From Amoeboaphelidium protococcarum X5 (Eukaryota; Fungi; Aphelidiomycota): a DNA stretch of 64,000 nucleotides. A program made the position numbers and the translations under genes. Below are positions 16,389 to 63,297 of the stretch, piece by piece; the stretch's first letter is position 1, and each line of letters starts with the position of its first letter. The stretch covers positions 531,147-595,146 of the forward strand of contig JALDTO010000155.1 of the NCBI GenBank assembly GCA_023515725.1. The letters run 5' to 3'. The notes beneath the pieces are model-generated. The model searched no databases, had not been told where the DNA came from, and saw only the letters and a program-made list of their open reading frames with translations.

Positions 16389-16723
16389 TATATATATCCT
16401 CTAAATCTAATGAGTGAGTGAGTGACTTACAATGGCTCTTTAACAAAAATTGAAGAGAAAAAGAGTAAAAAGATAGAGAGCAGGAAAGAGCTTGCTCGCT
16501 TTGTACATCTAGAGAGAGAAACGCAAAACGATCAAGCGTGAAAGTTTTCTTGAAATTGGAAAGGGGAAATAGAAATTAAATCGACGCGTCGCGCATCCGT
16601 TTCTGTTTCAGCACGGTCAAAAGTTCTCTTCATAATACGCTGTAAAAGTGCACAGTTCCATCATACGGTACTCGTTAATTTACTAGTTATAGTTAGCAGT
16701 AACTATAGTCTTTGTGATTAGCT

Positions 16724-18298
16724 ATGTAAAATCCACTTCTTATTCAAAGTACTAAAACCTCGTTTGCGGGAAATTAGATTACCGCTTCCTTGGAGTATCC
16801 CGCCAGGTTGACCATGTACAAGGATGCTCCGTCATTGGAAATATCTTTGGAAGAGTTTGAGCTATTTGCTGTGGATAGACTGAAGGTGCTATTGGAATTG
16901 GAGTCTGCAGTATTGCGCAATAGAACGGATGAACAGATGAGGACTCTATTCCGAGATCATCTGAAGAAGTTGTTCCCTTTCAGTCCGAATAATGCCGCCA
17001 CTCTAGGTGTTGACGTGGACGAGGAGCGACGTAAAGATTACATCAGTCACTTCATTCTACGTTTATCTTACTCCCGCACTGATGAATAGAGATCTTGGTT
17101 TATGCGTAATGAAGCCGTGCTGTTTAAAATGCGTTGGGAAATGCTGACCGATGATGAACGTATGCAGTTTGTGCGTGAGAATCTGGACATTGCTCGCGTA
17201 CCTAACTAGGAGAGATCTGCTCTGTAGTCGAGTCTAAGTGCATCTGTATCATCTCATTCATTTGGAAACTTATAATAGTAATAAGATGGCTCTAATTTGA
17301 AGGCTGAAGTTTATTATCAAGTCCCGTTTGAAAAAGTTTGTGACCTGGTTGGTAGACGTGAGGTTTTTCTACGCAATGGATTTGCCTATGTTAGAAAGAG
17401 TTAAATCTTTAGTATTGTGTTGAGTGAGTTTAAGCAGCATCTGTAGGAGTAATTGTTAGTATGTAGTAGACTGTTACCTCGAGTTGAGTAGGATGAGCGT
17501 CTGAAGCCTCTACTGGTTGGACTGTCAAAGTAGAGTCTGGATAGTGGATATAATAGCGCTAGTGGTTCTCTGTAGTAGCGCGGCGAAGATATCAAGTGGG
17601 ACCAGGTGGGCGATTATGTTCAACACTTTCCACCATGTATGAAGGTTCTGCACCAGTCGTTGAGAGAGAATTCTCACTTGAAACATTAGGGGAGATAGCA
17701 ATTAAGTCTATTCTTAAAAGGTATTGGACTACCATTGGAAGATGCGCTTATCTTTTGGTAGAAGGCCTTTAGTAAAAAGTATAATGAAGAGTAATTCAAG
17801 CGCTAGTACGCGTACAACATTCGTCACAATTATGGTAAAGAGGGAAAGCGCGCTGACTACACTCCATTTAGTTGTATGAAGATTATCACGTAGAATGCAC
17901 CTAGTAATGGAGAAGTGCATGGTTGTCCGTTTAAGCATTATAATAAAGACAGCCTGACCGGGTTGATGAGAGGATACGGACTTAAAGATGCAGATGCAAG
18001 AGAGGTAGTCAACTTGGCCAAGAATGGTGGTCACTGCCAGGTGGCTTGTACAAAGTACTTTGAAATTAGTCGCGGCATAGTACCATCCCAGTCGCAGTCG
18101 AGTAAGAATCAACCATAAGTAAGTTAATCTGAAGGTCAGTTTAAGAATGACACTCAGCATAACGTGATGGACACCATTGCTCATCCTAATCAGTTTTTCG
18201 ATTTGAGTCTAAAGTAGGCGGTTGGGAAGTCTACAACTGTCAACTCTTAATCTCAGTCATCTTAAGGTATTAGTGCAGGCGATGAAGCTGAGCAATGA
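16724..18298 (+). CDS. PRI2: DNA primase large subunit
   Basis: EISLEEFELFAVDRLKVL, RRKDYISHFILRL, HFPPCM, YNIRHNYGKEGKRADYTPFSC, HGCPFKH, HPNQFF (Fe-S domain). Confidence 0.97.
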
Positions 18299-18537: not shown

Positions 18538-20229
18538 ATGCCAAGAACAGCAAAGTAGGCGTAGATTGAGTAGCAAGATTAGCTACAAAATGGTACTCCG
18601 AAAATGACAGTTTAACAATTGAAAACAGAGTTGAAGTAGAAAGGCTTGCCCACATCAGGAGTGAAAGATGAGTTGATGTAGCGATATGTTCAGGCAATGT
18701 CAGAGTTTTAAACTGGCGATAATACGGAAGATATCGAAGATGTTGTAGAGGATGAGAGCGAGAGCGATGATGATTTATAGGCTGTTGGCAGATACGAAAG
18801 TTGGGCTCTTGGAGAGGTGCAGTCTGAATTGAAGCGAAGATCTCTGCCTGCAAAGGGAACTAAAGCTAAATTGATTGAAAGTCTTATCGCTGATGATTTG
18901 ATGGCAAAGTAACAATAGACCAAGTCAGATGCGGCTTAAATGGGCGGTAAATAGTAATCATCCGGTAATTCGCTTACTAATAAGGTTGCCAAAGTTGAAA
19001 AGAAGGTATTAGCAGATGGTGGTAGCAACAAGGTTGATTAAGAACTGTCATTGTTGTATTAGCCAGTTACAACTTGCTATTACTTTGTACTTGCATTGCA
19101 GGATTATTCGCTAAGTTTTGCTAGATATCTATTGGAGCATAAATCTTATTTATTCATTGCAATGATTATCGCTGGTGTATCCGCTGCTGGTACTCTGCTT
19201 GATAATCCTTATCAGAGTCAATTTGTGCTTGCAGAGTCTTTAATCTCGTGGTATTTGTGGTGGATTGTACTTGGAGTGGCGTCTTCCATTGGATTAGGTA
19301 CTGGACTGCATACTTTCGTACTCTTCCTGGGACCGCTTATTGCAGAAGTGACTGTATTCGCGTATGAGTGTCCTTCACTGGACTTTGATCTGCATGGATC
19401 GGATGCATTCATCTGCAGAAATAGTTACAATGGCAAGGTGGTGTTGTTAAATGTGTACAAAAAGATTATGTTTGAGGCGCTGGCCTGGGGTATTGGAACG
19501 GCCATTGGTGAGCTACCTCCGTATTTTGTGGCGAGAGCTGCTGCACTTGCCGGTCAGAGCGGTAGTGGACAGGCTGAGGAGGAGCTTGATGATATTGAGC
19601 GTCTGCAGAAGATTCCAATGAGTCAGCGCACTGTATGGGATAAATTGAAGCTGTTCATGTTCGAAGCGATGAAGAAGGCTGGATTTATGGGCATTTTGTT
19701 GTGCGCATCTATTCCTAATCCACTCTTTGATCTTGCAGGTATTACTTGTGGACACTTCCTGGTTCCATTCAGCACCTTCTTTGGTGCAACTCTTATTGGC
19801 AAGGCCTTCTTTAAAGCATCGCTGTAAACTTGGTCTGTGATTTTTGTGTTTTCTAAATCCAGTCTAGATAAGTTGTTGGCTGTGGTGAAGAAGTTTAATC
19901 CGCAGTTGCACATGATCATCTCAAAGTTTCTGGCTGAGTAGAGACTGGCGTTTAGTCGTCCGTCTGGTGTTAAAGTCCCCAATGCCTCCACGTCTTCTGT
20001 TATATCCACCTTGTGGAATTCAGTGATATTTCTCATGATCATGTACTTTTTGTAATCCATTGTGGTGTCGATAGCGTCCGCGAAGCGTAGAGCTTCATTG
20101 TCTTCCCAAGCTGCAGCTACTACTGGTAAGAGTGATGTATAAGCTGTCGGTACACCATCAAAGGCTGTCAAGAAACCTAAAAAGTCTCCATCATCCACTC
20201 GCAAGACTCCGTCAAAGAGTAAAAAGTGA
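18538..20229 (+). CDS. VMP1: Vacuole membrane protein 1 (DedA-family scramblase) with two N-terminal SAP motifs
   Basis: LGVASSIGLGTGLHTFVLFLGP, WGIGTAIGELPPYFVARAA, ASIPNPLFDLAGITCGHFLVPF; N-terminal extension in the same frame. Confidence 0.93.
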
Positions 20230-20363: not shown

Positions 20364-22628
20364 TCACTGAGCATCGTTGGCGTGCAGAAAACTAAATTCA
20401 ACGCCAGTAAAGTTTAGCACCAACATTAACGCCATGATAGTGGTGTACCAAACAATCACAGCGTAGCCATACATCTTTCCGACACGATACCGAGACAGTG
20501 GAACATAGATAAGATTAAATAGAACCATCAGAAGGAGGCCGCTGTAAGAAATCAATAAATTCGAATTTAACTGGAACTAAGCTGGCGGTTTTCCAATGCC
20601 CAATAGACCACTAATGCCAAGTACCATCAAGATATTCATCAGAGGTGAGGCAAAAGAGGCTGCGAAAGACATACGTGACAGACCCATCCTGGACAGAGTC
20701 ACATTGGACACCAGATCTCCGACTGAATTGCCCAGTGCAAACACAGTTATACCCAGAATGGCGTCTGATATATCAAAAATCTTGCCAAATGCTTTCATAA
20801 GGCCAACAACTTCATTACATAGACAGTATATCCACAATAATCCAACCAAAAATCCGACAAATGCAAGAAAGGGATGAGATATCGGAACGAGAGGTGTTCG
20901 CTTCTGAGTGGAGATAGAATTCACGTATCGCCGATAATATCTATACGGATTCGTGACGTACCAGCTGATTACTGCCAGTATAGAACCAATTACCAAAGCA
21001 AAAGCGTATGAAGGAATTTGAACATTATTACCAACCTTGACACTGAGCATGTATGCTTTAAGAGCGACCAGAGCAAAAAGAGGAGCTATAAACATCTGGC
21101 AAATGATAATCCATCGATCGATCCACAGACAACTTAGCTAAGTATTAAGCTAGCGTGCAATCTACTTGCAGCACTAATCATGTATTCTGTCATACTGCTT
21201 AGGCTTTAAAGCGGGCGAGCATTAGCCACACATCTCTGGTGTCCTCTTATCACCAACCACATGATCACCATGTCCACACTCAGACTCACTCAACTCCACA
21301 ACAGGTGTGGTGAGACTGAGTAACAGCAGCGCGGGCGCGTTAATAATACTCAAAACTCTACCGGTAAAGAAGGACAGTCTCCAAGTTTTGAGGATAGGGA
21401 ATGCATGATACGCCAGATATGTAACAGTGCCTACTTCCATTTCATCCTCTGAAGATAACTTGTCATTACACAGCAAACAAGTATCTGGCTTATAAACACT
21501 ACTGGTAGATTAGCCATCTTCATATTGAGCAATTCCATCAGAGTCGCATAATTGAGGAGGCAGTTTACTACTTTATTCATCCAGCTAATCCAAGCTGTTT
21601 GGATCAGAGATTAAAAGCATCTAGTCCTCCACCTCTTTGTACGCATCTTTCAATTCAACCGCAGCCACAATAGATGTAACTTGCTATCCATGTTGAACTC
21701 CTTCCAACCTCCGCCTGACAATACTTTCAGCAATAGATTCAACCGCACTACTATATGATTTTATAGACGACGAGTCAAGAAATACTGGAGTCTATGGACC
21801 ATCATCAGAACTACTAGATTCATACACATCTGACAGCAATCTCTGCGTCTCCTCCCTCCTAAACGCCGATTTTCGACGCGCCCTAATGTGACCATAAAAC
21901 ACGTACATAACATAAGACGCGTAGATACCAACCATCAGTAATCCCTGCCACCAGAACATTTAACCAGTAACCAATAGCACGCCGAGATACAAGACAGCAA
22001 CCATAAGGAATCCAATATCACGCACAAACGTGCCCCTCTCCACCTTGACCACACTCTACTTGGACGATATCACCACAGCTCCGGCCACTATACCAGCAAC
22101 AAATAAACCAGCGCCAATAATCTCACCAACACCCATCGCCACACTACCCACCTGATTAATGGCCACCAGAGAGGAAATCAAATCTGACGCGCCATTTCCC
22201 ACGGCAAGCAAAGTCACGCCAGCCACTTCTTACGGCAGGCTGAGCAGATTACTCAAAGTGCTCAAGTTGGGACAGAAATAATCAGACGCTGCTGTGCCCA
22301 GAAATACAAACAGGAATATCATCTACAGTCCAAATAGAATGAGTCCAAGCCATTATACATCCTGCAACTGACAGTAATATAGCTCCATGTATGGTATCAG
22401 AGAGGGAGAATGCTCCTTATCCAAGCAAAAATCTCTCACAAATTAACACCTCTCCTCAACAGGTATTTCTTCCGGAGAAATACATTCAGTAATGTTTCTA
22501 TAATGTACTTGTGAGACTTTCTTATTAATTTCATACTATGGCAACACCACTTCTGATTTGGCATGCAGAGTAGTAGTAGTAGCAAATATAAACAACAATA
22601 ACCAGAAATAACCAGTATTCTTCTTCAT
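20364..22628 (-). CDS. Cation/Ca2+ exchanger (CCX/NCLX/Ycx1-like)
   Basis: Alpha-1 repeat AGVTLLAVGNGASDLISS and alpha-2 repeat GITVFALGNSVGDLVSN; TAASDYFCPNLSTLS. Confidence 0.92.
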
Positions 22629-23131
22629 TGTGATATGATGTGCTTTATCAATAGCGAAAGACTTGAGTATCGCAATAAATGGTCAAGTATCTTACTATTA
22701 AAATTGATTCACAGGCACTCGATTCAGTTAAAATGGAGGGACAGAGAATATTATTATTATACTCCTGTAATATAAGAGCTACCCGTTAGAGTCCAAAATT
22801 ACTGTATGATCGGCCAAGTGAAGATTTTAATTCTGATTGGTCAACGCGATGAATGAAAAATTATTCACCCCCATCACGCGCGCGCTTCGTCTTGGGATCA
22901 CTCTGACCGGTTTAGTTGCTGTGCTTACATCAGTAATCGTCTGAGGAAGTGGAGAAAGCATGTGTAAATTTTGTATTCAAAAGCAAAAAGATATAAAAAT
23001 ATAGTTTCAACTATTATTTAACCGACAGCAAATTTAATCAATCAATTAATCCTCAATTTTAACAACATCGTACTACAATTAGAACAACAGCAACAACAAT
23101 GTATACTCACAAACACAAGTAAGTAAGTAAA

Positions 23132-24149
23132 TCACTTCTTGGCAGCAGTCTTGGCTTTAGCTGGAGTCTTCTTCTTGGCAGGAGACTTCTTCACAGCAGC
23201 CTTCTTGACAGGTGACTTTTTAGCGGCAGCAGGAGCCTTCTTCTTCTCCACACGCCCCTTCTTGACAACCTGCTTCTTGGCAGGGGAAGCCTTTTTCTTT
23301 GGCGAGCTTTTGGTTGCAACTTTCTTCGTGCCGGTAGCCTTTTTACCAGTAGCAGACTTGCTTGGGGATTTGACAACGGCAGCCTTTGTGGAAGATGAAG
23401 ATGCCGCCTTGGTAGGAGAAGCGGATTTGGCTTTTGGTGTAGCCTTCTTCTTAGCTGGAGCCTTGGTCTTTTTTGCAGTAGCAGCAGATGCAGTCTTCTT
23501 GGTTGCCGCCTTCTTCTTGTCAGCCACCTTCTTTGCAGCAACTTTACTCTTCTTGGCAGGAGACTTCTTCTTTGCAGCAGCGGTGGTAGAAGCCTTCTTC
23601 TTGGTACTCTTGGCTGGAGATGCAACTTTTTCAGAAGACGAGGCAGCAGATTTCTTTGGTGATTTAGAAGGACTCTTGGATGAAGCCTTCTTCGTGCTTG
23701 AAGCCTTCTTACTTGGAGACTTTGCTGGAGAAACAGCACCTGCCAACTTCACAGGACCATTAACGCCCTTATCTTGAACCAATTAACCTTCTTCAACACC
23801 CTTCTTGACGGCAAGATTTAGCTGACTATCAAACTTTGGGCCAGACGCAACAGACTTGTTATTTGAAACGATAAACTACACAAAGAACATGGAAAACAAT
23901 TATGAATGAAACACAATAAAACGAAATAACAATTACCTTCTTGATAGCAGTCTTGGTAGATCCATTCTTATCAGCAAGCTAGACAATAGAGTTCACCACC
24001 ATATCTTTGATATCAGCAGCAGCAGATGCGTCACCAGCCTGACTAGCCTTCTTTGGAGACTTGGACGGACTCTTGGAAACAGAAGCCTTCTTTGCAGATG
24101 ACGGCTTGGCAGCAACAGAGGTGGATGAAGTAGAAGCTTTCTTTGGCAT
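23132..24149 (-). CDS. H1: Linker histone H1
   Basis: Globular domain DMVVNSIVQLADKNGSTKTAIKK|FIV...LAVKKGVEEGQLVQDKGVNGPVKL (intron 23876-23936) followed by a Lys/Ala/SPKK tail. Confidence 0.95.
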
Positions 24150-29029: not shown

Positions 29030-29757
29030 ATGGTAAGAATTATGCATTGAAAGCGGTCGGTTGGAAATATGTAGTGGAGCAGAGAGAACTAGCGAAGGGT
29101 ATGCGGCACATATATGATGATATTATAGTTCAACTGAACCACATTTTAAATGGATGTAGATTAATTACTTTCGCTCCTATCTGATTATGCTCATACGCTT
29201 TGAATAGAGAAAATTTCGCTTGGTTTAGTGCTTCCTGATTACTACTAGATTCTACCGACCGCTTTTATAATAGTTTTATTAGACATGTCCATAACGCGTC
29301 ATTTTGTTTGTAAGTGTAGGTATTCAGTAGATTTGTTGAGGTTGGCCGCGTCGTCTTTATCAACTACGGCGAGAACTATGGAAAGCCAGCTATTATCACC
29401 GATATTGTGGACTAGAGCCGCGTCATGCTCTCAAATCCTCACCCAAAGTACAATGTTCCTCTCTAGATGATGGCTCTGAAGCGTGTCAGTTTGACTGATT
29501 TCAAGGTGAAGATTCCACGTACTATTGGTGAGCACGCACTGAAGAACAAGCTATAGAAATGGGAGGAGAGCGGTGATTGCAAGCTGTTCGCTGAAGGCGG
29601 TGCCTGGGAGAAGGGATCATGGAGCAAGAAGTTGGTGTTGAGAGCCAAGAGATCAGCTATGACCGACTTTGACAGATTCAAGCTGATGGTGGCCAAGAAG
29701 CAGCGCCGTCTGTTAGTCAACACTGAAGTTAACAAGCTCAAGAAATAGGCAAAGTGA
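29030..29757 (+). CDS. RPL14: 60S ribosomal protein L14 (eL14)
   Basis: ATG, then intron 29033-29319, then [35 protein letters not shown]...[10 protein letters not shown]. Confidence 0.95.
29109..29190 (+). ncRNA. Intronic box C/D snoRNA, U80/snR60 family
   Basis: Box C ATGATGA 29114-29120. Guide ATAGTTCA before D' CTGA (29134-29137) is antisense to LSU UGAACUAU. Guide CTTTCGCTCCTAT before D CTGA (29181-29184) is antisense to LSU AUAGGGGCGAAAG with one G-U pair. These are the two sites guided by yeast snR60 (Am817, Gm908). Confidence 0.85.
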
Positions 29758-29903: not shown

Positions 29904-32683
29904 TCACATAGCATGCGACCGAGCGTTGGATTTCATTTACTGAATCAAATTCATCTTGTTGCTTTCATCAGAGGAGGTCATAGTCATCTATGGTAACCCA
30001 TTAAAAGGACCGAGACGCGGAGAATTATGACTTTGATGATGTTGCTGAGACGGAGATGAGGTGTAAGTACTGCCACCGCTCTTATTCCTGATATGCTTAC
30101 GATATGGCTTGGTATTATCTAACGAGAGACTTGTGGCAGTTTTGGATCGCTAACCTTGAGAGTGTACTGAATAGCTACTATAACCAGGCGTGTCGGTTAG
30201 AGGCAAATCCTTCAGCGCAATGGAGACTGATGAGTCGCCCTGTTCATCTATTTCAATATGCGTGTCTGAATTCTTAAACTTGGAACTTAGAGATAGTGAT
30301 GTGCTAGATCTTTTATCAGCACTTATTCTGTTTGGTGGCAGACCTAGAGTCTACTACATCTGCTGCAACTTCAACTTCATCATGGCCGTCTTGTATTTCG
30401 CGCACCACAGCAGTATAATCCTTCGATGTCCTGGATTCACTATACCAATCTGAGCCAATTGATCATCCTGTGAATTGACAAACTAGTTGAGAGGCATAAC
30501 TTTCACCTCCTCAGTGATATATTACGGCAGATCCAGATATACCAGAACATCAGAGGAGGACTAGACGTCAGTGATATTTTCAAATGTGACGCTCTCTGTC
30601 ATTGATCCATTGCCTTGCCGCCTGAGACTCCCAATACTCTTCTCGCTGACATTATCATGGATGGAATTTCTAGAATTGGTCGATGATATCCGCCTATTGT
30701 TGTTGTTGCTGTGCTACTTCTACGAGCTTTCAATGTCCCCACTCAAATCTTTTGAATGTCTACTACTGAGACTTCTATCGTGATAATGAGGGTCTCTAGG
30801 TGATCTATCAGGATGGCTTACATCGTGAAAGAGTTGCCCTACGATACCGGGAGAATTCTTACCATTACCATTAGTACCAATAGATGCCTGAGTAATCTAA
30901 AGTTCTGGAGAAGTGCGACTGGAATCGATGTAATCACGATTATCATCAAAAGATGATTTAGTCATTTTCTTTTTCATCTAGACAGGCCTCATGCTAATCT
31001 TCATGGCCGCAATCTGATCTATATCCTGCTGCTTCAGTGACTATCCAGCTTAACTATCCTTCTTTGCAAATAATTTTGAAAACCATCCAGTCTACATTAA
31101 AACAAAAGAAATTATATAGAGATGCATTATAGATAATTCTTACCGATTTCTCTTCTGACTCTGCTCTCTATGATGAAAAACTTTAAGCACCTTCGTCAGA
31201 AACTGTTCGATAGTGACCTTTTAGCAATGACTGTGGCTTCAAAGAGTCCATACTAACAAGTCGCCCCACTTTCAGCAATTCTAAAATCTCTTGATTTTAA
31301 GTGAGAGATTACAAGAATTATGTCTGCGCATCGATGGAATCTAACTATGGAGAAGGTATGATGATGGGGCACTTGCGATCATTTAACATTTGTACCAGCT
31401 CAAAATGATTGTAGAATGCAGCATACATTATAGCAGTCCATTAAACATTATCATACGCATCAATTTGAGAGCCACAGTCTAGAAATAATTTAACCAGAGA
31501 TAGGTCGCCCTTGATGGATGCCAACATCAGCGGCGTAAACTAATCTTCAGGATCCCTGGCGGCAAGGCATTTGACATCCTATCTGATGTAATCTTCAATG
31601 GCTGACGCGTCATCGTTCGTAATCGCGTCGAATATGCCATGTCGCTCGTCTCCAGTCCTTACTGAGAAGTTTGTACGGGTCCTTTCATCTTGCTCCGCGC
31701 CTAAATACTTCATAACCATCTCTGCAATATCCTGACATCGTCGCTCCAAGGCCACGTCTAAAGCAGTCTTACCCGACCAAGATTTAACATAAATATCTGC
31801 GCCATTATCGAGCAATAATTTGACAATTTGCATGCCAGCACCCGCTGCAGATATTTTACTCTATTTCCCGTCCGATACTGAAGCCGTTTATTTAATTTAT
31901 AGCATAGCAAGAGACTAAGTACAAGCAGAGTTGATTGCATAGAATATGGCGCTCCATCCATTCAAAGAATTCTAATTGTTGCACTCAGCGCCTTCCTGAA
32001 GTAGAGCTTGGACAATTCCAACGCTTTTCCCGACATGACACGCCATCATAAGAGGACTAAGACCAGGTATGCTTCGGCCAATTGACAAAACCTTATTGGG
32101 ACTGCACCCAATATCCACCAGCAGAATTTTTACCAGCGAAAGATTAGACTCATACACGGCGCACAATAAAGCGGTCACACCATAATCATTTACGTCATCA
32201 ACCATCAGGCCGGGTGTTTCAAGCAACTTTTTAATTATCGCGGAGCTGTTTCGGGCGCATGCAAGCATAAAGGGAGTCCAGCCGTAATCATTTCGATCGT
32301 TATTTCTAGCTCCATTCTACAATATAATTTGAGTGACATAATTAATTAAATAAAGTTGAATATCAATTGATTACCTTTAAAAGTATTTTGCAAACTTCTG
32401 GCGAAGAGTAGTATACTGCGTGATGAAGCAGATTACCTTGATTCACTTTGAATGGCCTAACAATGAGCGAGGGGTTCGCCTGTAAAAGTTTAGCGATGAC
32501 TGAAACGTCGTTTGAGCATACGAACTTGTACAGCTCATTGCAATCACTGAGAAACTTCTCTTGCGACAATCGCTCATCGTCCCGCCTGGCATCAGATCCC
32601 CCCACTGACGAAGAGTCGCTTGATCTTGAACTTTACTTTTTGGGAGACTTGCTACTCTTCAAGGCTGCCTGTGCCTTTTTCAT
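29904..32683 (-). CDS. Ankyrin-repeat protein with a C-terminal SAM domain
   Basis: Multiple ANK repeats (GWTPFMLAC, GVTALLCAV, SGKTALDVA, TPLMLASIKG); SAM-like DVLVYLDLPQYI...DQLAQIGIVNPGHRRIIL; introns at about 32322-32374 and 31096-31143. Confidence 0.82.
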
Positions 32684-59577: not shown

Positions 59578-59864
59578 AAATTTTTATTAAGTCCGGTTAT
59601 AATAGACTGATTAACTATTTATTCTGCACTTTTGACTACAATTTTACGCTGTAAAAGCTGTGGCGTAAGAACAATGATCGTGATCAATTCGTTTTTTCAG
59701 TCGATTGACCGTTCGGGTGAACAACGCGTAGAGAGATTCCTTCTCAAGCGACCTTTTTCAATTTCCTTTTTCCCGACTGCTTCATCTACGTGTGTAAATT
59801 CGAACCATCCTGCTTTAGATTTAACTCATTTACTCTTTGAATTACTATAAGACTGAGTTATATA

Positions 59865-61508
59865 ATGACGCGTTACGAAGATAGCTATAGAGGTAAAGGA
59901 TATTAGTACTCTGGTGCTGCTGCATAATTTACTGAGAAGAATCCTGGTTCTTATTAAACGGATTATCAATAATCAAGAGGCAGAGATTACAATAGAAGGT
60001 CTGATTATGGTGTGCATCGACCTGGTTCATACTCACAGTAGAATTATTAGAACGGTTCTGGCGCAGCGAAATAATCTTAGCCGTAATAATATCGTAATAA
60101 TGCAAGAGATTACTCGCCTGGTTACTATAATAGCAAAGCGAACAATCACCAGGGTAATATTAACGGTGGTGCGCGTACTTCTAGTGTGAGGTAGAGAGAT
60201 GATTACTCATTGCAACAGCAGCCGTAACAACATCGTCGCCAAGAGCTAGCAGAGATTAAGGCGCCGCAGTACAAGTTAGAGCTATGTCAGACGTATATGG
60301 ACACTGGTATGTGCGGCAACGGTCTGTATTGTAAATTCGCACACGGTCAGAGTGAAGTTGGTATGATGGTGGTGGAGAAAGATTTTGCTATATCTGCTGT
60401 TGTGTAATTGTAATCTGGATAACGTGGAGATGATTATATCGCCGGTGGTAGTGGTGTTCGTCACGCTGATAATGGCAACAATTATGATAGCCAATAACAA
60501 CAGTAGCGTTCTTATGATGGCGCAGAGTATGCTGAGGATTAGCAGTATGATTACGCACAAGATGGAGGAGAGTTTGCGGAAGAATATCCTCCTTAAGGCG
60601 ATTATCGTTATAATGAATTCAATGCTGAACAGGAACTATTTAATCGCAAAGATAATCATCATCATCAATTCGATGAGCGAAAATTCCGTACTGCCATGTG
60701 CTCTTATTTTGTCAAAACTGGCCATTGTCGATTTGGAGATGATTGTAAGTTTGCTCATAGTAAGGATCAGCTGTAGAAACCTTAATCGGAACATTCATAT
60801 GGGAGAAATGATTAAGCTAAAGATTAATAGTTTTCATAGTAGTAGGAGTAGTTCTAGTTTGAAGACCCGAAGAATTAGAGGCAAGTATAAGGAGATTAAA
60901 GACGTGATGGGGAGATGTATTCCCGTCCGCCATAGCAGTAGTATAATAAGAGTGGTCGTTCTCGTGATTATGGCGCCGAATATCCAAGAGGTGGTGAGAA
61001 TAGAAGATATGATAATGGTGATACCGAAAATGATAAATATTATCCGAATGGAGATTTCAATTATCGCCACGAGTCCACTTACCAATAGTAGTATGACAGA
61101 GACAATGGTGTCGCCGGTAAGAGTCATTATGATGGTCCAAGATAGCGAGGTCCATTCCCCGGGAGATCCACTGTTGGTATCCCTGCTGATTAAATCTTTG
61201 AACGACGCGCTAATAGTAGTCATTACAAGTCCACTCTATGCAAGTACTTTGAAGAGTCTGGTCGCTGTAAGCTGGGAGATACTTGCACGTATGCTCATGG
61301 TAGACATGAATTAAGATAGCCATCAAGTGGTATTACCCGGTATTCTGATGCCCAAAACAACGGTAGTAATAGTAATAGTAACGGTAATGCTGAAAGTAAT
61401 TAGGCGAATGACTTGCCAGACATTTGGGCTTGTGATAACGGCAGTATCGATCTTCATAACAAAAGTCATAATAACAGTACCATTGCCGGCGAGGAAGGTG
61501 AAGTCTGA
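59865..61508 (+). CDS. CCCH zinc-finger RNA-binding protein (3 dispersed fingers, Y/Q/N/G-rich)
   Basis: [26 protein letters not shown]; [26 protein letters not shown]; [26 protein letters not shown]. Confidence 0.9.
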
Positions 61509-61707: not shown

Positions 61708-63150
61708 TCAACTTGCACTTGCATTAGATTGCATCACAGGAGCACTAGACTGAGACTACTACCTTGACGGCTATTAGTTTTACTATTATTGAGACATTTA
61801 AGACATTTGTAAATAATGTCTGTACATGTTCTAAAATTGTTATTACTAGATCTACTATTCTTGTGTGATGTATTGCGGATATTATAAAGACTGATTAGAC
61901 TACTGTTACTATTAAAGCTGTTACTACTACGCTAGCATCATCTATTATTACTACTTCTACATTTAGTAATAATGATCTCCTTGTGCATCCCCACCATTCT
62001 AATAATATGCCAAGTTGGCAGAGGCAGCTTGATATGCCATGAACGCATTCACACTAAACTTCATACTGTCTTCATATCCACTTGTTTATTACTACTATTA
62101 TTACTATTGGTGAGATGGCATCATTGAAATGTTCTACGCAGATGAAGACGCACTAAGACCGCCGCCATCAGCACCGCCAGACTTGTCTTTGCCCCACGCA
62201 ACTTTCAACTTGGCGCCATTAAATGCCGCGTTGGCTAAGTAACAGATGGCCTATGCAGCATTCTCGTGACTGTCCATCTTGACGAATGCGTATCCCTTCT
62301 CATGATGAATCTTAATATCCAGGATATGGCCATACGGAAGGAAAGCAGTTTGTAGCATCTCTGTAGTTGTATTAGGAGGAATACTAACGTACACGGTGGT
62401 GACACTGGGCTAACTCTAATTCAGCACAGTATTCAAATTCAGTGTAGGCCTCTTAGGATGTTCAAATACAGGTGCAGTGGAATATGTACCAGTACTCGCG
62501 GCACTCTAACCTTACTACGAAAACTACTACTACGGCTAAAATTACTACGCGCCATCCCCTTATTAAGGTTAACCAGAAGCATTAGAGCCAGCTTGTAGAT
62601 TTGCTTTATTATGAGCCCAATTGATTTTGACACATCGCTAGCCAATCTGGCGACCGTTCATCATCTGAATGGCACGCTCAGCATCTCGCTTAGTCCTGAA
62701 AGTCACAAATCCATATCCTCTAGTCTTGCCCGTCTACAGGTCCCACATTACACGCGCATCTGATAGAACACTCCCACCTAGAGCATCAGCGAACGCTCTA
62801 GCCAGAACTTGATCATCAACATCGCCACTCAAATCGCCAACATAGAGAGAGTAATGACTCGAGATATCCTCCTTGCTCTTTGTAATCTGAATATACCACT
62901 TCAACTGCACACTCAAATCATAGATGCGCCTTCCATTCAGCGTCAATATAGCCGTCTCTGCAGACTAATGATCTTTATACTCAATGTATGAGGTAGAGGT
63001 TGAGCCTGATGCGCGATCATGTATTGTCCTTATAGACACTATAGGGCCAGCGGTGGAGAAAATAGATGCCAACAGCTAATCAGTCACTCTTTAATCTAAA
63101 TTGCTGGCCTGTATAGTCGTTCGCCCAAAGCTATCTTGGATTTTTGGCAT
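61708..63150 (-). CDS. PUB1: TIA-1/Pub1-like triple-RRM protein with a Q-rich tail
   Basis: LYVGDLSGDVDD, DARVMWDLQTGKTRGYGFV, IRANWAH, TTVYV, KGYAFVK, LKVAWGK. Confidence 0.88.
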
Positions 63151-63297
63151 ATTGTCTAACGCTGAATATGTGATAATTTCGTATTTCGGCCTGATCGGAT
63201 GAAAAAAGATATTTTTGTGATGAAAGAGCTAAGGGAAGCTAAAAGTGCTACTATAAGCGAAACAATAAAATAGGCATAATTAATTATTAATTAAAGA

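Follow-up and report, generated by a model that had tools for sequence, protein, structure and literature searches.

A predicted VMP1 orthologue with two SAP motifs and a basic S/TPxK tail in the aphelid Amoeboaphelidium protococcarum, and the wide occurrence of SAP-VMP1 in non-vertebrate opisthokonts

Can a phospholipid scramblase of the endoplasmic reticulum (ER) be tethered to chromatin through DNA-binding motifs of its own? This question is raised by a gene at 18538-20229(+) of a 64,000-nucleotide stretch from Amoeboaphelidium protococcarum X5 (GenBank assembly GCA_023515725.1, contig JALDTO010000155.1, positions 531,147 to 595,146 of the forward strand; hereafter the window, whose own coordinates are used throughout). 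The gene joins two SAP motifs, a complete VMP1 core and a Lys-rich C-terminal tail, and an earlier note, made from the letters of this DNA, had proposed that it encodes an undescribed chromatin-tethered scramblase of the nuclear envelope. On the comparisons reported here, the fusion of SAP with VMP1 is not new, and the apparently exotic protein becomes an ordinary VMP1 orthologue with two additions that appear lineage-specific, namely a doubled SAP, which is shared with its nearest relative, and the basic tail.

The gene is an intronless open reading frame (ORF) of 563 codons followed by a TGA stop, in which TAA and TAG encode Gln; under the standard or bacterial code the same interval is fragmented into short ORFs. 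It contains 20 in-frame TAA/TAG codons, and such codons are also found throughout the window, where each of the 18 long ORFs surveyed (444-1623 codons) has 4-59 of them and TGA terminates all 17 whose end falls inside the window. Across these 18 ORFs, TAA/TAG do not accumulate towards the 3′-ends; the last of them stands 4 to 233 codons before the stop, a spread to be expected of codons that never act as stops. In alignments of the VMP1 product, the TAA at aa 430 stands opposite Gln in 236/236 homologues, the TAG at aa 468 in 216/234, and the TAG at aa 48, which lies within the first SAP, in 68/121. Thus, TAA and TAG are read as Gln and TGA is the sole stop window-wide. UAR codons encoding Gln, together with a fungus-like protein set, have been reported for A. 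protococcarum (PMC5304391), and Paraphelidium retains the standard code (PMC6299283). The code of the window and its Holomycota-like VMP1 fit an aphelid of the Amoeboaphelidium type. A scan for a suppressor tRNA-Gln found no tRNA gene within the 64-kb window.

The gene is closely flanked on both sides. Its ATG at 18538 is separated from the TGA of the upstream gene for DNA-primase large subunit by 242 bp with a GC content of 33%, and 137 bp with a GC content of 29% lie between its TGA at 20227 and the end of a convergent Na/Ca-exchanger gene, whereas the SAP region has a GC content of 40% and the tail one of 45%. The locus is one continuous intronless gene, whose domains follow in the order SAP1, acidic linker, SAP2, second linker, full VMP1 core and Lys-rich tail.

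The core (aa 176-515, 19063..20082, +), taken to include all hydrophobic segments from first to last, identifies the protein. Stop-free pieces of the gene served as queries in the Pfam and relative searches, and the table-6 translation was used for script-based analyses. The core piece 19063-19824 shows 43-51% identity with named VMP1 of fungi and animals (E 4e-72 to 1e-63, 82-100% of the piece being covered), and its best match is an unnamed protein, P0001, from the metagenome contig L001 (57% identity, E 6e-82); matches over this range (E 6e-82 to 1e-63) bear out the VMP1 identity given in the earlier note. The VTT/DedA domain match within the core (aa 319-423, 19492..19806, +) reaches 26.2 bits (E 1.2e-5) against Pfam VTT_dom, under the cut-off of 33.9, and this shortfall is typical of the family because every VMP1 scanned against Pfam, named or unnamed, scores 25-33.6 bits, all below the cut-off. 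An alignment of 11 sequences including the window piece contains the invariant motifs SS.GLG.GLHTF, WG.GTA.GELPPYF, AS.PNP.FD.AGI and PF.T.F.A, and its columns GLGTGLHTF, GELPPYF, PNPLFDLAGI and PF.TFFGAT are invariant or nearly so. The DedA/VTT core and the conserved motifs are common to the window protein and to human VMP1/TMEM49 and the other characterised VMP1, and scramblase activity has been demonstrated for human VMP1 (PMC8077175). Hydrophobic segments occupy aa 202-223, 229-278 and 486-516, and the window protein is nested in opisthokont VMP1 in a quick maximum-likelihood tree. By these criteria the gene product is classed as an orthologue of VMP1, the DedA/VTT-family phospholipid scramblase of the ER.

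Upstream of this core, two SAP-like motifs lie in the VMP1 frame of the single uninterrupted ORF where the earlier note had placed them (aa 23-50, 18604-18687, and aa 86-116, 18793-18885), and both hold up as SAPs in HMM (hidden Markov model) and, for SAP2, structure checks. As delimited here, SAP1 spans aa 22-50 (18601..18687, +) and SAP2 aa 85-124 (18790..18909, +). The stop-free piece with SAP2 (18781-18909) scores 26.6 bits against Pfam SAP (PF02037), above the cut-off of 23.9 (E 4.4e-6). SAP1 is split by three sense TAA/TAG codons into stop-free pieces of 7-13 aa and, because all of these are <20 aa, was scored not by Pfam but by a local HMM made from six Pfam-verified SAPs, SAP1 itself excluded; it obtained 37.7 bits and also aligns with SAP1 of L001. 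An AlphaFold2 model of SAP2, computed from an input alignment of 24 VMP1-linked SAPs, has a predicted local distance difference test score of 93.3, with one helix over residues 10-19 of the piece and another over 28-42. Its best Foldseek matches in the PDB are the SAP domains of Tho1, E1B-AP5, SF3B2, MKL1 and Hcc-1, with a template modelling (TM) score of 0.64-0.88 and a root-mean-square deviation of 0.5-1.8 Å, the E-values being weak for a query of only 43 aa. SAP2 is thus predicted to adopt the helix - extended loop - helix fold of SAP. Solved structures nearest to the VMP1 SAP are those of the Tho1/SARNP type both by fold (TM up to 0.88) and by profile, since a profile of the 24 VMP1-linked SAPs finds the Tho1 SAP nearest (E 2.8e-15), a domain that the title of its PDB entry calls DNA-binding. 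The consensus of the VMP1-linked SAPs reads TV..L..ELKRR.L...G.KAEL..RL. Between the two motifs, the acidic linker (aa 51-84, 18688..18789, +), defined by composition, has 34 residues with zero Lys/Arg and a net charge of -13 over aa 50-84. SAP2 is followed by a Gln/Lys-rich hydrophilic linker to the membrane domain (aa 125-175, 18910..19062, +), likewise defined by composition and not alignable to homologues. In the whole N-terminal region of ~200 aa, a hydrophobicity scan found no hydrophobic, signal-like segment, the first one starting at aa 202.

Is the combination of SAP with VMP1 peculiar to this organism? A first word search, with the 254-aa core as query and limited to proteins <=445 aa, returned VMP1 of Zoopagomycota, chytrids and animals at 43-57% identity, of which four were SAP-positive by the local HMM (three in the precomputed Pfam column): that of Batrachochytrium dendrobatidis, two gene models of B. 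salamandrivorans, and a protein of EukProt 'Sdes', presumably Sphaerothecum destruens, which stands beside animals in the VMP1 tree. A JGI metagenome scan with the VMP1 alignment gave 80 loci, and five of these metagenome or metatranscript loci (L023, L026, L035, L036 and L056) each consist of one transcript-like ORF, 453-479 aa long, whose N-terminal SAP is in frame. When the 459-aa ORF of L036 (P0121) was taken as query in a second word search, which raised the length ceiling to ~800 aa, 56 of the 116 newly returned proteins carried both SAP and VMP1 by the local HMM (~54 by the precomputed Pfam column). They come from sponges (Oscarella, Corticium), cnidarians (Xenia, Acropora, Actinia), echinoderms (Asterias, Lytechinus, Diadema, Antedon), molluscs (Haliotis, Mytilus, Biomphalaria, Pinctada, Argopecten, Littorina, Elysia), the annelid Owenia, insects (beetles, locust, termite, thrips, louse) and other arthropods (tick, sea spider). 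A Pfam re-scan scored the SAP at 37-50 bits in the proteins of sponge, coral, starfish, abalone, locust, termite, annelid and sea spider as well as in the query P0121, and found none in platypus VMP1; the vertebrate VMP1 returned are ~405 aa long and without SAP. The ceiling of 445 aa had missed nearly all SAP-bearing forms, and a length-windowed search can in this way mask longer relatives.

SAP sequences are alike across a kingdom-level distance: the chytrid has WTVKKLQDELRKRKL, a cnidarian-like transcript has WTVKQLQQELRKRTL, and WTVK.LQ.ELRKR.L is common to both. Such likeness argues for one origin of SAP-VMP1 rather than repeated fusion, and the N-terminal SAP looks like an old opisthokont feature of VMP1. 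A word search with the N-terminal 80 aa of the Batrachochytrium protein returned only the query itself, the exact-word requirement being limiting. The earlier note had regarded the combination as unusual and undescribed, and the first part of this view does not survive the searches, in which SAP-VMP1 turned up across many phyla of invertebrates as well as in Batrachochytrium and one holozoan protist. The second part stands in a restricted sense: the fusions are described only as database annotation, many invertebrate SAP-VMP1 being named 'SAP domain-containing protein' in UniProt, and no discussion of VMP1 joined with a SAP domain was found in the searchable literature; in the VMP1 papers that came up, 'SAP' denotes severe acute pancreatitis.

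Some of the entries without SAP deserve separate mention. Two proteins of B. salamandrivorans, P0014 and P0051, represent the same gene modelled differently in two assemblies; one model begins inside the SAP, and the other has the SAP and omits the region before the first membrane segment. Given such diverging models, the absence of a SAP from some 'SAP-less' VMP1 entries may be a matter of annotation and not genuine. In animals, entries labelled 'isoform X1' often bear the SAP and the shorter 'X2-X4' entries of related species are without it, which hints at alternative first exons behind SAP-plus and SAP-minus isoforms.

A single SAP is widespread; the doubled SAP appears not to be. Neither word-search protein set contains a two-SAP protein, and among the 236 proteins and 82 loci examined the tandem appears restricted to the window gene and its nearest relative, that of L001. 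On this contig, metagenome gene calls give a two-SAP ORF of 153 aa (54-428) and the VMP1 ORF P0001 of 366 aa (491-1591), and the former ends 26 nt before the latter, on the same strand but in a different frame. A GT..AG interval of 62 nt (429-490) would link both in frame, and the two ORFs, each searched on its own, are probably one gene split by an intron. The SAPs of the first ORF reach 87.8 bits against Pfam, and the N-terminus of the window protein aligns with this exon colinearly and with each SAP opposite its counterpart (47.8 bits). The L001 protein is thus like the window protein in having two SAPs in the same order before VMP1 and a core 57% identical, and unlike it in using the standard code, in its probable 62-nt intron and in lacking an S/TPxK C-terminal tail. 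In another metagenome relative, L002, the gene model opens with a partial SAP. In the maximum-likelihood tree, for which only opisthokont sequences, a quick search and a midpoint root were used, the window protein and P0001 are sisters with a support of 98 among chytrid-grade Holomycota, and SAP-positive rows occur on both the holozoan and the holomycotan sides.

The other addition is the basic C-terminal tail (20083..20226, +), defined by composition. The earlier note had read it as a basic TPSK/SPSS/TPSK tail, and so it is: its last 28 aa (aa 536-563, 20143-20226) have 9 Lys, 1 Arg and no Asp/Glu, and contain TPSK at 20152-20163, SPSS at 20185-20196 and TPSK at 20206-20217; both TPSK sites fit the consensus of cyclin-dependent kinase (CDK). 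Net charge over aa 512-563 is +13. With S/TPxK clustered in a Lys-rich, acid-free segment, the tail reads like that of linker histone H1. Full-length fungal homologues in the 11-sequence alignment mostly end ~15-25 aa past the last hydrophobic segment, and the tail here extends ~30 aa beyond the point where most of them end; none of the C-termini of the relatives listed has a comparable tail. Similar S/TPxK stretches turn up sporadically among the relatives: 'Sdes' has them behind its SAP, and L035 and a Cyprideis protein carry them C-terminally. That the TAA at aa 535 is a true stop, by which the tail would be lost, was considered and set aside given the sense TAA at aa 430, the missing pile-up of TAA/TAG and the coding-like GC of the tail, with the caveat retained.

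Among comparable known proteins, SAP-VMP1 of non-vertebrate opisthokonts (BATDEDRAFT_37041 of B. dendrobatidis and the proteins of Oscarella, Acropora, Asterias, Haliotis, Schistocerca and Zootermopsis) have the same N-terminal SAP, hydrophilic linker and full core in one polypeptide, but with one SAP in 440-540 aa, whereas the window protein has two SAPs, an acidic spacer and a Lys-rich S/TPxK tail in 563 aa; the vertebrate VMP1 returned are shorter still. Tho1 and Hcc-1/SARNP are messenger ribonucleoprotein (mRNP) factors, and proteins of this type are, unlike the window protein, soluble, nuclear and without a membrane domain. A functional analogy can be drawn with the HeH/LEM proteins (Heh1/Src1, Heh2, MAN1 and LEM2), which are membrane proteins with an N-terminal helix-extension-helix module on the nucleoplasm side; fungal and amoebal HeH domains of inner-nuclear-membrane proteins have been reported to bind DNA directly (PMC4810098). 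However, the window protein differs from the MAN1 type in being a multi-pass scramblase instead of a two-pass protein, and in the absence of MSC and winged-helix domains. Membership in the HeH/LEM class was rejected, because no piece of the window matched a HeH or LEM HMM at E <= 10 and the relative P0047 reached only 15.1 bits, under the cut-off of 28.9.

How might such a protein work? We lean, by a little, towards an ordinary VMP1 orthologue in which the SAP was duplicated and an S/TPxK tail added, and in which SAPs and tail would hold a fraction of the protein at the nuclear envelope via nucleic acid. Both termini would face the cytosol or nucleoplasm, because the N-terminus of ~200 aa is without a hydrophobic segment and the tail is strongly positive. 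Such an orientation has been reported for VMP1 and TMEM41B; in the latter, a sister protein, the N-terminus (S35) and the C-terminus have been mapped to the cytosol (10.1101/2020.12.18.423352). The membrane core would equilibrate phospholipids across the bilayer of ER and nuclear envelope, and the SAPs and the tail would lend the protein an affinity for nucleic acid, with DNA or chromatin as the likeliest target. Through this affinity, part of the protein could be kept at the inner nuclear membrane, or at ER-chromatin contacts while the envelope is growing or re-forming. An extralumenal domain of ~22 kDa, as in the window protein, is small enough to cross the pore membrane. Phosphorylation of TPSK could weaken nucleic-acid binding in mitosis. 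It has also been speculated that ER scramblases influence the curvature of the nuclear envelope (PMC13061601).

Several points weigh against nuclear-envelope retention via nucleic acid. The second helix of SAP2 has another residue in the place of a nearly invariant Arg (IESL), the acidic linker between the SAPs could counteract DNA binding, and the tail is located downstream of the last in-frame TAA and exists only if TAA is always sense. A number of SAP proteins are known chiefly for their part in RNA metabolism. Human VMP1 functions without any SAP, and VMP1 RNA interference left the nuclear distribution of phosphatidylserine unaltered in human cells (PMC11329639). SAP folds do not always bind DNA either, as exemplified by the ER protein MANF, whose SAP domain binds the ATPase, or nucleotide-binding, domain of BiP. 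It is possible, if less probable, that the SAPs are instead cytosolic protein- or RNA-binding modules that might bring a chaperone, mRNPs or a partner in lipid transfer to the ER; the tail would then serve as a polybasic signal close to the membrane or as a sorting signal, and the protein would scramble lipids in bulk ER, out of contact with chromatin. Besides MANF, this explanation is favoured by the role of Tho1 and Hcc-1/SARNP, the nearest solved SAPs, as mRNP factors and by the characterised VMP1 functions, which are all ER-based (autophagosomes, lipid droplets and lipoproteins). However, the solved and described examples of SAP and HeH encountered in this analysis are mostly in nuclear nucleic-acid-binding proteins, an H1-like S/TPxK tail together with two SAPs favours nucleic acid, and no partner is known. 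A bolder extension of nuclear-envelope retention, in which the N-terminal SAP would be an ancestral and overlooked VMP1 module of opisthokonts that was lost in vertebrates and that would provide a chromatin- or nucleic-acid-anchored pool at the nuclear envelope, while the form with tandem SAP and H1-like tail would be an intensified, CDK-switched one for envelope growth or re-formation, must be regarded as rather unlikely.

Two further explanations concern the reality and the novelty of the fusion, and both are much less credible. The SAP region could be a separate small gene or a 5′-leader, translation could start at an internal Met such as aa 135, or the tail could be untranslated: a single stop codon, TGA, makes long frames easy, so that by an estimate from base composition ~4% of runs of 175 random codons would be free of TGA, spurious antisense ORFs of ~300 codons are indeed present in the window, and neither the first 21 aa of the product nor the linkers are conserved in the homologue alignment. 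Such an artefact is nevertheless very improbable in view of the two SAPs that occur in the same frame and order as in L001, the SAP-VMP1 single ORFs in intron-free transcripts and many annotated genomes, the mere 242 bp between the ATG and the previous gene, and the coding-like GC of 40-45% in the N-terminal region and tail against 29-33% in the flanks. Barely plausible is the idea of a fusion unique to this lineage and not seen before, by which a novel type of chromatin-tethered scramblase would have arisen. The silence of the searchable literature on the VMP1-SAP combination and the restriction of tandem SAP and tail to the lineage among the sequences examined would agree with it, but single-SAP VMP1 is widespread in Metazoa and also present in Batrachochytrium and a holozoan protist, with SAP sequences strikingly alike across these groups. 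A lineage-specific origin of the fusion itself is refuted by this wide distribution.

The neighbours of the gene are unrelated to VMP1. The DNA-primase large subunit upstream (16718-18295, +) was recognised by Pfam with 42.2 bits on one piece, and the Na/Ca-exchanger-family membrane protein downstream (20367-22682, -) with 72 bits. At 3 kb from the VMP1 gene, 23132-23782(-) is an H1-like ORF of 216 aa, rich in Lys, Ala, Ser and Pro and with SPxK and KKxx repeats; it has no Pfam match, which is attributed to low complexity, and a possible first exon in another frame at 23979-24149(-) suggests an intron. Elsewhere in the window, two long TGA-delimited ORFs on the same strand, 29907-31238(-) and 30949-32442(-), overlap by ~290 nt in different frames; an intron or a frameshift within a single gene may account for this. 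TAA/TAG make up 11% and 7% of the codons in the Gln-rich ORFs 61711-63297(-) and 59841-61505(+), respectively, and spurious antisense ORFs of 150-500 codons are common, the stop codon being single. The one match in an Rfam scan of the window is a C/D-box small nucleolar RNA of the snR60/Z15 family at 29106-29192(+), with 48.8 bits against a gathering score of 41.

For the family as a whole, many non-vertebrate VMP1 bear a well-conserved SAP that the characterised vertebrate protein is without. If it is true that this SAP binds chromatin, VMP1 would have a role at the nuclear envelope that is invisible to work in mammalian cells.

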